Shown: positions 34,613 to 61,720, counted from the first letter of the stretch. The stretch: DNA of 64,000 nt from Macrostomum lignano (GCA_002269645.1 NIVC01000361.1:124001-188000); one strand, 5' to 3'. Numbers and translations are program-made. The notes: a model not told the origin generated them from the sequence alone.

Positions 34613-37600
34613 TTACTTAGCAGACGTTCCGGGAAGCAGTCCGGCCTCCTTCGCCAGGAAGTGGAAGTACGAGTCCTGCTTAGCCAGCAGGTCCCGAGGA
34701 GGCGCGAACTCTCGGACCCGACCGCTGTCCAGCACCATCACCCGATCCGAGTCCATGATGGTGGCCAGGCGATGGGCGATGATAATCACGGTGCTGTCGG
34801 CGAACTGCTGTCTCACGGTGGCCATGATCAGCGAGTCGGTCTCCAGGTCGACAGCGGCAGTGGCCTCGTCCAGCACGAGGAGTCGACTGCGCCGCATGAG
34901 CGCTCTGGCCAGACAGACGAGCTGGCGCTGTCCTACCGACAGGTTGGTGCCGCCCTCTCCGCACTCGTGCGCCAATCCCGCTGACAGACCGCGAGCCCAG
35001 CTGGACAGGTGCGCCGCATCCAGAGCAGCCCACAGCTCCTCGTCTGTGCGCTCATCGAACGGGTCCAGGTTCGATCTGAGACTGCCGCTGAACACAGTCG
35101 GCTCCTGCGGCAGGATGGTCAGTGCTGAGCGCAACGAGTGCAGGCCCAGCCGGTCGATTCGGACTCCGTCCACCTCGATGTGGCCAAAGGCCGACTCGAT
35201 CAGACGGAACAGGCCCAGCGTGAGGCTGCTCTTCCCTGCTCCAGTTCGACCCACAATCCCCACTTTGTGACCCGGCTCAAAGCTCACGCTGATGCCCTGC
35301 AGCACCAGATCGAGTCCCGGTCGATAGCGAGTGGCGTAGTTACAGAACTCGACTCGACCTCTCGAAGGCCAGCCAGAGGGAGGCAGCGAGTCCGTTGTCC
35401 ACGGCGCCTCCGTCTCCAGATTTGAGTACTCGTCCAACCTTTCCACAGCCACTGAGTTTGTTTCTAGCTCTGTAAGTTGACGGACCATCCAGTTAAGGGC
35501 ATCAGATATTTGAAGAGCGTAAGACACCGATAGTCCAACGAGACCGGGAGTCAGCGAGTCGCGACCAAGGACCGCTAGCAAAGCGGCAATCACCACTGCT
35601 GCTGTTCCAAGAAGTTCCAATCTGAAGCCGAGCCATCTGTTTGAAGCCAGCTTTAGGAAATAAAACCTGCAAAATTTAAAGGTTTTTTACATTTAGATTA
35701 TAAACTATTGGTGTAAGCGCTTGAAAAAATAACAAACAATAAACTTTACAGTTTAAAAAATCAAATAAACACAAATGCTTCTAACCTTGAATTGTTATCA
35801 ACTCGATAGTCTGATATTCCGACAAACCGCTGCTGCTGACGGAACGCTCGAATGACCGCCGCGCCAGCGATGGACTCGCTGAAGTTTGTGAGTATCGGAG
35901 ATCGCGATCTCGAGTCCAAACGACGGCTTTGCCGAGAGATGGGCAGGTAGAAAACCTGAATACCTGCGTAGATAATGCCGAGAGGAACTACTGCGGCAAG
36001 AAATATTGGCGTCGTGTACGAAATGACAATTATGCAAGACACCGTGGCCATGAAGCACTCTAAAAAATCGTTTATTATCATCGGCAGCTCTCGATCAACA
36101 ACTTCCATGTCCTTGCTGAACCTGTTAACGATTCGACCAGTCGGTGTGGTATCGAAGAAACTCATCGGAACTCGAAACAGACGAGTCAGCAAAGACTTGT
36201 GGATTGAACGAGATGCTCTCAGTGCGGAGTAGACCCCCATTACAGCATATATACCAACAAGGACAACAATTCCTACTCCGAAGATACCGTAAATGCTGAG
36301 GTAGTAGTCATTTATGTCTCGAAGGTATGCAGAGTTGTTCAGGTTTCCAGTGACGCTAGCATTCGAAAAGAGCGGGTCTGAAGTCCAAGTGGACAGCCAC
36401 ACGCTGCTAGCAACGTTGACAACGGTGTAAGCGAGATGCGCCATTATGGTCATTAGAACCAGATGATATCCACGAGCTGCGATGTAAAATACATACGACT
36501 TAAGAGACACGCTTCCGGACTCCATTGTCTCCTCGTCAATCAACCGTCCGGATTGCTCAGCAGCCTTCCTGGTACCGTCCACATCTTCATCACGCGATGG
36601 TAGCTTCTCAGATGTTAGTTGGCTGATCCTGCAACAAAATTTGAAAGCATGCAAGTGTTGACAACGAGCGAGCTCTGAGTTTTTGTACCAGTATGCTTGA
36701 GCAGAAAACCCTCTGGGTAAATTACTTAGACGTTTGGCGCACAATCGAAGGCCTCTTCGAGTCAAGTCTGTCGGCAGTGTCGGAGCAGTGGCTGTTTACT
36801 GAGCTGGACATCTGACGGACGTGATGAGGTGGTGGAGATTGACTTGAAGACGTTGCAACCACAGCCGGACTCTCTGCACATACTTCGTGAGCAGAGCTTG
36901 TGCAGCTCGCGAGTCTCTGCAAGATCCTCGCTTTCTCCGCCGCCAACTCTTCGTCTTCTTCTTCTCTCTGGGGCTGCCGCGGCGATCTCTGCGATCGAGA
37001 CGCTGACGTCGCGAGACCTGCTGGCTCGCTTCCGCTCTCCGTCATGTAGGAAGAACTCCTTCAGGAAACTCGCGAACGGTCCATCGTGATCCAGCAGATG
37101 CTCGTAGCTGCCCTGCTCGCTGATGCGACCGTTGTCAATGACGACAATCTCGTCTACGTGAGGCAACCAGTGAATGCCGTGAGTGACGAGAATTCGAGTC
37201 TTGTCACGAAGAAGACCAGACTTTCCAATCACCTAAAATGTACCAGTTTATCCTTAGGTTTTACCAACAATTAACATACAGTAAGCAACTACGAGCTATT
37301 TTATCCATCTTTGATTGCAGACAATAGAGGCCTGAATCATTATGCTGACCTCGTGGAAGAGCTTCTTGCCGACATGCGAGTCCACGGCTGCCAGAGGATC
37401 GTCCAGTAGGTAGATGTCGCTGTCTTGGTAAACGGCCCTCGCCAGGCTCACTCGCTGCTTCTGTCCTCCAGACAGGTTGATCCCGCGCTCTCCGATCTCA
37501 GTCGCATCGCCCGCAGTCAGCAGCTGCAGGTCCTTTTCGAGCTGACACGCGCGCAATGCTTCGTCGTAGCGAGCTTGGTCGAAGTCGCGACCGAACAGAA

Positions 37601-40600
37601 TGTTGTCCCTCACGGTCAGGTTCTGAATCCACGCCTCCTGCGGCACGTACGCCACTGAGCCCTGCAAGGAATACATTGACGAAAAATTCATTCAAGTCTT
37701 GAATTTACTCACAGCGTCTGGGTTATCAACTGAAAACCACAAACGAAGTTTAAAAATGTAATTAGCTACTCACTCGAGTAGTAATGCTGCCACAAAATTT
37801 CACAGTTTCGCCCAAAACTGATTGCAGCAGAGACGACTTTCCGCAACCGACTTTGCCAACGATTGCGATGAGTTTACCTTTAGGTACTTGAATGTTCACG
37901 CTGGAGATCATGAAGTTTGTAGTGAAGCATTCTATTAGTGTTATTTTATGAACTTAAAAATTACTTATGTCAGCACCCACAGAACTAAACTCCTCTCTGT
38001 AGTGAGTGAAACGAGGCTAGACTGCTTGTTGTAGTCGATAGTTGCCGAAAGCTTGCAGGCGAGAATAATAGCGATCAGTATATTTATTGAATTATTGAGC
38101 TGAGTGAGAATGGTGGCTAAAGTCGCACCATGCACATTTGATATTGTACGCATAAGGGTTGAGCTAGCAGAGTCACCCGGCGCAGCCGCTAACAACCCCC
38201 AACACACACACGATAGTAGGCGCTGCCTACACTCTCCTTACTCTTTCAGCAGCGGTTCGGAATCAGTTCGTTTCCATCCAAAAGAGGCGCCTTCGATTTC
38301 TACCGAGTTGCCATCTGAAACATTTTTTCAAGGACGTGAAGCACCACAAAGGTATAAAGCGTGCATACCTGCAAGATGTATACCACTCACCTGGAGAGCT
38401 TGGAAGCTTCAGAACACTCGACTCATCAATGTCGTCTTCAAACAGAAAATTCTGGATGCGCTTAATGGACACGTAGGCCTGTTTGAAAAGTCATGGAAGC
38501 TATGTTTAAAAGATTTTTGGACACTAAAAATTTGAAAAGCTCTGCGAAAAATGACCTACATTAACGGATTCCGTAATTGTCCAAGGTAACACTGTGATAG
38601 GAAAACGCAGAATGTTGAAAAGCGTCAAAGATACAAACGCCTTGCTTGCAGTAAGAATATGATCATCACCAGAGTAGATGTACGTGATGAAAGTGAGCAC
38701 CATCACGAGGAATGGAGCCACTGTCCACATGATGATCACAACTGAAAACAGGTAGGACATCTGGCCCAAAAATCCCACTTCTGTGCGTCGTACGTGGCTG
38801 ATTTTCTGCTGAAACGATGGTTCCCATGCGTACAGCTTGATCACCTTCATCGCATTGAGCACTTCGTTAAGCAGCTTAAGCCGCTCATCCTTTGTCTTCA
38901 TTTCCTTCTCTTCCAGCTTCTGCGCTTTGGCCATGATGTAGCCGTTGACTGGAATTATCACAACGAAAATTCCGATTCCCGCAAGAACTGCCGTGCCAAG
39001 CTGAGCCCACAGCATCACCAAAGCGATTACGATTTGGACTGGAGACACCAGCATCGCCCAGAAAAAGGCTGCATTTGGATAATAATTAATTAATTATTTT
39101 CTGACAATATAATGAGGAGTACTCACAAAGCATTAAACTGCTGCAAATTCACTGAAGTCAAAACTTACGTATGGAGTCTGCGATTTTGTTTGAGTCAACA
39201 GTCATGAGATTGACAATTTCGCCAACTGTTGACCTCGCTCTCGATTCTTGTGTCAGCGTCAAAGACTGAAGTTTGGTGGTTTGATACCAAAGTATTTTGA
39301 ACGCAACCACTCAGACATCGCTTTGAAATAGAAATAAAATAATTACCTTGCGGTAAATTGAAGCAATCAATGCTGAACGGAACTTGATTCCGCAGGTGAG
39401 ACTCAATTGAAACGAGGCATGAAAAGTAATGCTGCTCAATACGGCTACTACAAAGAAGAGAAAAGTGTACAAAATTCCATGCCACAGCTCTTCTCCGTTG
39501 GTGGAAAAGTTGATCAAACTTTCCAGGAGAAACGGATTGGCGAATGCCAACAACCCGTGGATCATCATGATCGACCAGGACAGAATCAGCTGGCTTCCGA
39601 ATGCTTTCCAAAGTGCTGGAAGAAGCTTGCGTCGGTGGCGACCTCCAGCGCCGTCTCTACTGTCATTGCTGTGCAGCTGGTCGCCCTCCGAGACGCCCGA
39701 ATCGACCAGCTGCTCCGTGTCTGCATTGACTCGATGATGAGTAAAGCTCAGATTCTCTTGCTGCTCGGCCGCGTCACGCTCGCTTCGTGACAGCGCCACC
39801 AGCGGAGGGAAGTAGCGCACAAACTCTCCGTGCACATTCCGAACTCGCAATGACGGGTCTAGCCGGTTCACGTCCGCCTCTCCGATCTCCTTCCTGTACG
39901 CGTTCAGCACGGATCGGTCAAGCCAGGAAAACGTCAGTCGCGAAATGATTGACGAGCGGCACTCGGCGAACACCGGCTGTCGCTCCGCCGCTGGCACTGC
40001 TCCAGCCGCTCCCACCGACCCAGTCGCAGTCGGAGAGTCGTCCGCCTCGTCTGCAGGCGTCAAACCGGAGTCGTAGATACAGGTGAGGACCAGCTGAGTC
40101 AGCAGCAGAGCCAGGTACGATGAGAACGTCGTCAGACCGTAGACGTCTAGAACTGAGCCCTGCAAGAATTTCAAATTGCTGGATGAGCCACTTATAATTG
40201 TGGGAAGAACTTTTCGGGTACTCATAGTTATGAGTAAAAGTAACCATTTAAAAAGCAGCATCCCGCTTCACTTACAGCATCCGAGGACTTGATGATCCTG
40301 GTGTACAACACGGGAACCGACACCACCAGAGACATCATGTAGAAGAAGAACATCATCGCTGATGCTCCAATCAGCCTCTTCTGCTCCATCGATTGCACAA
40401 CGAGACACACAATCTGGAATGTGTGTGTGTCACAGTTTTGAGGTGTCTGTCACAGATTTCTCACATCTCTCACAACGCTCTCGTCAGTCCGCACTCACCA
40501 ACGCCACTACCAGAACACTCGGCGACACGTAGCTGATCGCGTCCGGCTCTTCTCCGCTCGCCTCTTGCGACGCAGCCTTCAGCAGGTCCATGAATGGAGC

Positions 40601-61500: not shown

Positions 61501-61720
61501 GCTGATCATGGCCACCGTGAGACAGCAGTTCGCCGACAGCACTGTGATCATCATCGCCCATCGCCTGGCCACCATCATGGACTCGGATCGGGTGATGGTG
61601 CTGGACAGCGGTCGGGTCCGAGAGTTCGCGCCTCCTCGGGACCTGCTGGCTAAGCAGGACTCGTACTTCCACTTCCTGGCGAAGGAGGCCGGACTGCTTC
61701 CCGGAACGTCTGCTAAGTAA
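55509..61720 (+). CDS. ABCC: ABCC/MRP1-like long ABC transporter, copy 3 (14 coding exons, apparently intact)
   Basis: Exons include 55509-55550 ([14 protein letters not shown]), 55666-55839, 55952-56077, 56167-56304 and 56421-57209, in frame through to GLLPGTSAK*. All ABC motifs are present. Confidence 0.93.

Follow-up and report, generated by a model that had tools for sequence, protein, structure and literature searches.

A 64,000-nucleotide stretch of the Macrostomum lignano genome (GCA_002269645.1, NIVC01000361.1:124001-188000), called the window below, holds in its right half three paralogous long-type ABCC (MRP) genes, each with 14 exons. In all likelihood these genes go back to an anciently triplicated MRP1/2/3-like gene, of which three segments have been kept about 98.6% identical by interlocus gene conversion and the rest has diverged. 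Within the same genes, segments of low synonymous divergence (dS), introns included, alternate with segments that are saturated at synonymous sites, and this alternation is what points to interlocus gene conversion acting on old duplicates. The domains lie in one polypeptide in the order TMD0-L0-TMD1-NBD1-linker-TMD2-NBD2 (TMD, transmembrane domain; NBD, nucleotide-binding domain), which is the order of the long ABCC/MRP type (MRP1/2/3/6, YCF1). The near-identical segments are TMD0 with the proximal L0 linker, NBD1 from the Q-loop to its end, and NBD2. They are 98-99% identical in every pair and jointly account for about 44% of the coding sequence; introns 2-4 and 11 also belong to them.

The first copy (c1, 34613-41047) is on the minus strand, with its ATG at 41047 and its stop codon at 34613, and its reading frame is broken as assembled. 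The second (c2, 44260-53925) is also on the minus strand and has an intact open reading frame (ORF) of 1634 amino acids, and the third (c3, 55509-61720) is on the plus strand, head to head with c2, with an intact ORF of 1613 amino acids. The c1 gene follows 3.2 kb downstream of c2 and has the same orientation. The start codons of the divergent c2 and c3 are 1583 nt apart, and the spacer between them (53926-55508), which is presumed to be a bidirectional promoter, resembles nothing else in the window. Exon models were built from tblastn matches of a guide human MRP1 sequence, stop-free frames and GT-AG sites. The guide, which was used both for finding exons and for numbering residues, is not a database record. 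It is self-consistent, with 14 of 14 pocket residues at their published numbers, and its first half agrees with the bovine MRP1 alignment from the PDB. Intron positions and phases agree among the three copies, and the exon phases of c2 and c3 are identical. Introns are mostly 70-150 nt long, the exception being intron 10 of c2. Exon 1 supplies 14 codons in each copy, and these are old, diverged sequences.

Three tracts of near identity were confirmed with a repeat finder, blastn and three-way alignments. The TMD0/L0 tract runs from exon 2 to the middle of exon 5 with introns 2-4 (c1 39798-40911, minus strand; c2 52677-53794, minus strand; c3 55663-56790, plus strand), and c1 differs from c2 and c3 in it by 1.3-1.7% substitutions. 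In c2 and c3 the repeat finder reports this tract as a 1.1-kb inverted repeat with arms 1.87 kb apart. The NBD1 tract (c1 37017-37661, minus; c2 46842-47486, minus; c3 58682-59328, plus) covers exon 11, intron 11 and the first part of exon 12, and with them the Q-loop, signature, Walker B, H-loop and end of NBD1. The NBD2 tract (c1 34613-35435, minus; c2 44260-45082, minus; c3 60898-61720, plus) is the second part of exon 14 up to the stop codon. Inside the tracts there are exact common runs of 250-350 bp. These coordinates agree with those of an earlier sequence-only reading of this DNA for TMD0/L0 and NBD1. For NBD2 that reading had placed the start at 35560 in c1 and 60770 in c3, about 125 nt too far 5' of the start found here, which is at about 35435 in c1, 45082 in c2 and 60898 in c3. 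Within the c3 tract, exon 5 carries at 56559-56608 an 18-nt tandem repeat, GGAGCGGCAGGAGCGGTG, in 2.8 copies, which underlies an in-frame 9-nt length difference (an AGA insertion) from c1 and c2.

Beyond these three-way cores, two of the tracts are extended in one pair of copies. In the variable L0 linker, c3 leaves after the peptide FPPL, and c1 and c2 stay together to QL(I/M)LSW at the start of transmembrane helix 6 (c1 39600-39797; c2 52479-52676; both minus strand). In the linker between NBD1 and TMD2, c2 leaves after RASRS, and c1 and c3 stay together to CSDTA (c1 36770-37016, minus strand; c3 59329-59577). The peptides at all of these switch points are the ones that had been read off the sequence beforehand. 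After NBD2, the similarity of c2 stops at the stop codon, and the likeness of c1 and c3 runs about 90 nt further into the 3' untranslated region (3'UTR; 34523-34612 and 61721-61811), at 91% identity. At least two conversion events per tract are needed, because the likeness of one pair reaches beyond the stretch common to all three copies. A local direct duplication was also noted in c1 (34409-34515 versus 34537-34645, 79% identical), where it spans the end of the coding sequence and the beginning of the 3'UTR.

The contrast between the tracts and the blocks between them extends to introns as well as exons. Identity is 97.8-100% in exons 2-4 and 96.6-100% in introns 2-4, and 97.8-99.0% in exon 11 and 99.1-100% in intron 11. 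In exons 6-10 it falls to 49-76%, and the introns among them, at 37-59%, are unalignable; exon 13 is at 61-68%. These figures bear out the description of near-identical tracts, introns included, with a divergent TMD1, proximal NBD1 and TMD2 between them. Synonymous divergence was expressed as pS, the proportion of differing synonymous sites, using Nei-Gojobori counts on the codon alignment. Every tract and every pair has a pS of 0.024-0.058, whereas the blocks between are saturated at 0.74-0.83, and Fisher tests of synonymous sites in tracts against those outside give p = 7e-140 to 4e-167. The first 75 or so codons of exon 14, just before the NBD2 tract, have a pS of 0.57-0.84. Thus dS is clearly not uniform along the genes; uniformity was what the sequence-only reading had named as counting against itself.

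The two pair-specific extensions show the same contrast between pairs of copies. In the L0 extension pS is 0.055 for c1-c2 versus 0.57-0.61 to c3, and in the NBD1-TMD2 linker extension it is 0.037 for c1-c3 versus 0.74-0.77. A Sawyer-type permutation was used for these pair-specific fragments, the three-way tracts being covered by the synonymous-site Fisher tests. The c1-c2 fragment in L0 spans 53 polymorphic sites and the c1-c3 fragment in the linker 91, and both exceed all 10,000 permutations (p<1e-4), so the GENECONV-type check that had been proposed comes out in favor of conversion for both fragments. Substitution divergence within tracts is 0.8-2.1%, with a pooled value of 1.39%, and is homogeneous over 11 tract-by-pair comparisons (chi-square p=0.57). 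The three-way relation in the tracts is star-like. No smaller mosaic within the tracts was convincing from the order of copy-specific differences, for which there are too few sites.

Base composition also differs between the two kinds of segment. GC content at fourfold degenerate sites (GC4) is 0.67-0.68 in tracts versus 0.43-0.46 outside (p 6e-10 or lower). Three neighboring genes have a GC content at third codon positions (GC3) of 0.64-0.75 and a GC4 of 0.59-0.72, resembling the tracts. GC-biased conversion had been considered as proof of long-term conversion, and it was downgraded because of the tract-like high GC3 of these neighbors.

The tracts differ in how their two ends are placed. It had been proposed that switch points fall inside exons and differ by pair. 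This holds for the 3' edges, which lie in the variable L0 linker, in the NBD1-TMD2 linker (both of them sites of several indels between copies), or at the stop codon or in the 3'UTR. It does not hold for the 5' edges, which are common to all pairs, those of TMD0 and NBD1 being no more than 4 nt from the acceptors of exons 2 and 11. Upstream of the TMD0 edge are intron 1 and the diverged exon 1, and upstream of the NBD1 edge is intron 10. This intron is 2999 nt long in c2 (47487-50485, minus strand) versus 112 nt in c1 and 151 nt in c3, and it forms a heterology block that adjoins the 5' edge of the NBD1 tract. The c2 intron contains a 53-nt tandem repeat at 49726-49841 and a GC-richer core, with nothing similar elsewhere in the window, and its excess length is probably an old insertion of repeat DNA. 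NBD1 is only half homogenized: the tract starts between Walker A and the Q-loop, and the Walker A half is old.

The identity of the genes was established from the predicted proteins. The best matches of the c3 protein in the PDB (phmmer) are bovine and human MRP1, at about 1214 bits over residues 10-891 and 972-1608, and Pfam reports TMD0_ABC (E 3.6e-10), two ABC_membrane stretches and two ABC_tran stretches. The earlier call of three ABCC/MRP paralogues with a TMD0 is supported by both comparisons. Walker A, the ABC signature and Walker B can be read from the sequences in both NBDs. Identity to human MRP1 is 57-63% in NBD2 and distal NBD1, and it is lowest in TMD0, at 27-29%. Protein database searches returned a best match of 40% identity for a TMD2 query and 63% for an NBD2 query. 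The top named NBD2 matches are from molluscs, then flatworm, insects and fish, and the ABCC sequences are metazoan-like. Two metagenome scans, one with a back-translated exon 5 and the other with a degenerate NBD2 peptide pattern, gave no match. Apart from the roughly 90 nt of 3'UTR common to c1 and c3, there are no other ABCC fragments or common flanks in the window.

The proposed history would begin with the triplication of one long ABCC (MRP1/2/3-like) gene in the distant past. Non-allelic conversion among the three copies would then homogenize TMD0 with proximal L0, distal NBD1 and NBD2, while exon 1, distal L0, TMD1, the Walker A half of NBD1, the linker and TMD2 would have escaped conversion long ago. 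The escaped segments would since have diverged to synonymous saturation under purifying selection. A head-to-head arrangement with inverted repeats favors intrachromosomal conversion. Conversion is probably recurrent and long-standing here and not a late one-off. Homologous repair can use the exact common runs of the tracts but finds no near identity in the saturated flanks, so the tracts have most likely stayed alike without a break ever since the genes were duplicated. A steady state between mutation and conversion is expected to give the equal divergence (about 1.4%) and the star-like relation, since independent single events should scatter in age. Of the earlier claim of recurrent gene conversion, the conversion itself stands, with synonymous sites and introns homogenized alike, and the recurrence is likely.

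Several points weigh against this reconstruction. The conversion is read from a single assembly, and the same divergence in every tract also fits one short burst of events. With the neighboring genes having a GC3 like that of the tracts, the contrast in composition may be a loss of GC in the escaped segments and not a gain by biased conversion. The two 5' edges that lie exactly at splice acceptors come without a detailed explanation. All three frameshifts of c1 fall inside tracts, and the quality of the sequence there is thereby open to doubt.

Among the other accounts of the pattern, the one that survives best accepts conversion and makes the pattern neutral. It says that TMD1 and TMD2 escaped by heterology (indels, intron turnover and the 3-kb insertion in intron 10 of c2), without selection for specificity, and we hold this to be a real possibility that falls somewhat short of an even chance. 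The tract edges at the non-homologous introns 1 and 10 and at the indel-rich disordered linkers are in its favor. These edges coincide with sites that accumulate heterology, as a mechanical barrier to heteroduplex extension predicts, and we suppose that they are set mainly by heterology. The NBD1 tract also starts in the middle of the domain, at an exon boundary and not a functional one, and the TMD1 block is cut by five introns. However, TMD2, in a single intron-free exon of 0.8 kb, escaped, and the TMD0 tract with its three introns did not, so heterology alone is insufficient.

The transmembrane domains were examined at the residues that contact leukotriene C4 in MRP1, which we take, with their numbering, to be those of the bovine MRP1 structure work. 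The positions, in human MRP1 numbering, were checked against the guide sequence and, in the first half of the protein, also against the PDB alignment. Seven of the eight TMD1 positions vary among the copies, versus a background of 49% (nominal p=0.028), which speaks against a purely neutral escape; in TMD2 only one of six varies. In the order c1/c2/c3, the variable TMD1 residues are M/V/K at K332, H/H/Q at H335, F/F/L at L381, F/C/F at F385, F/F/L at Y440, I/V/L at T550 and F/F/T at F594. W553, R1197, N1245, W1246 and R1249 are unchanged across the three copies. The last four are conserved pocket residues of TMD2, and going by homology the copies would be predicted to export organic anions or conjugates at the expense of ATP. 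These residues give a hint that the substrate ranges of the copies differ, mainly through TMD1. The variation in the pocket is no evidence that selection keeps conversion out.

Rates of change say little more about selection. The proportion of differing nonsynonymous sites (pN) is 0.17-0.29 outside the tracts, well below pS, which indicates that all three sets of TMDs evolved under purifying selection. With dS saturated there, dN/dS on the TMDs is uninformative. Windows with pN above pS were found nowhere along the genes except in the disordered linker, and so in no TMD window, as a neutral escape would have it. It is plausible, judging from the residues just listed, that selection protects specificity modules. 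The accompanying idea that the homogenized modules form a common engine is inaccurate in its details, because NBD1 is cut after Walker A and TMD0 is no part of the ATPase engine. That c1 is frame-broken as assembled also speaks against a protection of the TMDs by selection.

It is unlikely that the tracts, previously as divergent as the rest, became alike in one brief episode, at a dS of about 0.04, made up of some six or more conversions or segment replacements. Such an episode would account for the equal divergence in all tracts and pairs and for the star-like three-way relation. Against it, saturated dS and unalignable introns would have left homologous repair without near identity to work on, most of all in TMD0 with its three introns, and several independent events at one time are unparsimonious. 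The GC4 contrast, too, suggests a lasting difference in regime.

There is very little to recommend an artefact of assembly or polishing, in which paralogous reads were collapsed or cross-polished and the true copies are divergent throughout. What speaks for it is the state of c1, whose small deletions at CCC, GG and (GAA)n sites inside tracts are typical of residual long-read consensus errors. However, each copy is a locus of its own with unique flanks, in a window that contains no Ns, and the tracts still differ by 0.8-2.1%, plus microsatellite and 9-nt indels. Polishing cannot turn introns of 37-59% identity into introns of 97-100%, and the tract ends vary by pair. Uninterrupted microsatellites of 350-410 nt were assembled through, which suggests long reads able to span tracts of 0.65-1.3 kb.

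We give practically no credence to an account without conversion, in which the tracts are the most constrained parts of the protein, or carry overlapping RNA constraints, and have stayed identical since duplication: NBD2 and distal NBD1 are indeed the most conserved ABCC parts, but synonymous sites and four introns are homogenized as well, TMD0 is in a tract though it is the least conserved domain, and the Walker A block of NBD1 (exon 10, outside the tract) has an identical protein sequence in all copies with a window pS of 0.60-0.92, so that strong protein constraint alone does not lower dS here.

The state of c1 was considered separately. Exon 2 has two 1-nt deletions relative to c2 and c3 (40769-40780, minus strand; CCC to CC and GG to G), 10 nt apart and with a net shift of -2, and in exon 12 a (GAA)n run is 2 nt shorter than in c3 (36965-36966, minus strand), which shifts the frame. 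As assembled, the c1 coding sequence has 4859 nt, which is no multiple of 3, and the frame is first lost in exon 2, a defect that the sequence-only reading had not noted. Putting back 4 nt gives an uninterrupted frame of 1634 codons. The amino-acid branch of c1 is the shortest of the three, at about 0.063 in both divergent blocks, TMD1 and TMD2 (calculated by hand from the pN values), which indicates that c1 is no long-term pseudogene. Its reading frame is disrupted, and the signs of relaxed constraint that would go with an unprocessed pseudogene, raised dN and further stops or indels, are not seen. Either c1 was inactivated only very recently, or minor indel errors remain in the assembly where complexity is low.

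If the frame of c1 is truly broken, it would be a pseudogene able to donate its lesions to working neighbors, as is known for CYP21A2 and ABCC6. Human ABCC6 exchanges sequence by gene conversion with its nearby partial or inactive copies ABCC6P1 and ABCC6P2, and c1 as a pseudogene could likewise pass on frameshifts. The human case differs in that it involves recent primate segmental duplications and only 5' exons, and not old full-length paralogues with alternating tracts.

The mosaic is a new example of a known phenomenon, and its mechanism and consequences are textbook material. Partial concerted evolution of tandem duplicates is known from the primate red and green opsins, RHD/RHCE, CYP21A2/CYP21A1P and the globins, and has been treated in the models of Innan and Teshima. 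These genes share with the ABCC cluster a mosaic of homogenized and divergent parts, converted introns, and divergence kept by selection or heterology. They belong to other gene families, and the contrast is extreme here, with a dS of about 0.04 versus more than 3.

The closest described case among ABC transporters is that of the PDR pumps ABC11-ABC1 (and ABC12) of Candida krusei (Pichia kudriavzevii), which undergo concerted evolution by ectopic gene conversion (PMC6053246). Those are intronless ABCG/PDR genes of a yeast, with more than 90% of the gene homogenized and only small patches protected, whereas the present genes are animal ABCC genes, known from sequence alone, with about 44% of the coding sequence homogenized, whole TMDs at synonymous saturation and one copy inverted. 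In the yeast pumps, short transmembrane patches that determine substrates are reportedly kept different by selection, a result ascribed to Lamping et al. in 2017 (Genetics 205:1619), and patches of that kind match the idea in the sequence-only reading that selection protects specificity.

Conversion from arm to arm is also known from the palindromes of the Y chromosome. It has been described in inverted repeats as well, the inverted Attacin duplicates of Drosophila subobscura (PMC7584159). With c2 and c3 head to head and their TMD0 tracts inverted, the M. lignano cluster has a similar geometry, one that favors intrachromosomal conversion. It differs in that the arms are homogenized only in parts and that a third partner, c1, lies 3-13 kb away in direct orientation relative to c2. 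The Drosophila dMRP gene (CG6214) has mutually exclusive alternative TMD exons, and so also combines a common NBD scaffold with alternative transmembrane segments. The analogy is one of outcome only: dMRP is one gene with alternative splicing, and here three separate genes each have a promoter and an exon 1 of their own. In the literature that was searched, conversion mosaics at the level of domains are not described for animal ABCC genes. A survey of Tetrahymena mentioned concerted evolution only as one way in which tandem ABC clusters might come to have low Ks (PMC2984421).

The cluster shows clearly how, in nature, a large multidomain transporter gene can be divided up between conversion and divergence. 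Across the three paralogues, TMD0 and the ATP-binding parts evolve as a single unit, and the transmembrane domains that line the pocket evolve separately. Trees of such clusters based on NBDs would wrongly suggest a very recent duplication, whereas trees based on TMDs show an ancient one. For assembly and variant calling, tracts of 0.65-1.3 kb are sites of read mis-mapping.

We regard as a long shot the further idea that the homogenized tracts serve as in-phase junctions for shuffling TMD modules, through inversion between c2 and c3 or through chimeric c2-c1 transcripts. By the first route, a crossover in the NBD1 or TMD0 tracts, which are inverted between c2 and c3, would flip the DNA that lies between the paired tracts, and the two genes would exchange their promoter-TMD0-TMD1 halves. 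By the second, transcripts reading through from c2 into c1 would splice exon 10 of c2 to exon 11 of c1. If true, shuffling would yield chimeric pumps, with TMD1 of one copy and TMD2 of another, and would enlarge the repertoire combinatorially.

The rest of the window was also surveyed, and an Rfam scan of it found no RNA family. Just downstream of c3 there is an inverted repeat of about 238 nt (62464-62698 and 63454-63691), 97% identical and with arms about 790 nt apart, which may be a foldback element or the two ends of a small DNA transposon. On the other side of the cluster, long micro- and minisatellites are packed unusually densely into the 20 kb upstream; their units measure 4, 13, 14, 22, 34 and 50 nt, and each is 300-630 nt long in all (8777-9080, 11571-11962, 19502-19823, 20403-20887, 22061-22414, 22705-23334 and 26129-26707). 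Between c1 and these satellites is a gene for an MFS-type transporter (28407-31467, plus strand) with at least two coding blocks, whose intervening intron holds an (AGT)n microsatellite of about 410 nt (29291-29699). Between that gene and c1 there is a Cys/Pro-rich ORF of 172 amino acids (32022-32540, plus strand) with repeated CGPCAPC motifs and no Pfam match.

Farther to the left, a single-exon ORF of 688 amino acids (12957-15023, plus strand) belongs to the amiloride-sensitive sodium channel family (ASC/DEG-ENaC; Pfam ASC, E 4e-44), and an exact look-up in a public collection found no identical gene product. Near the left end of the window, a GC-rich (59-68%) element at 1352-5280 on the minus strand resembles a Ty3/gypsy long terminal repeat retrotransposon. 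It has an intact pol ORF of 980 amino acids, with RVT_1, RNase H and integrase, and upstream of it a gag-like ORF of 261 amino acids with DUF7041. The element may be a young, active copy.

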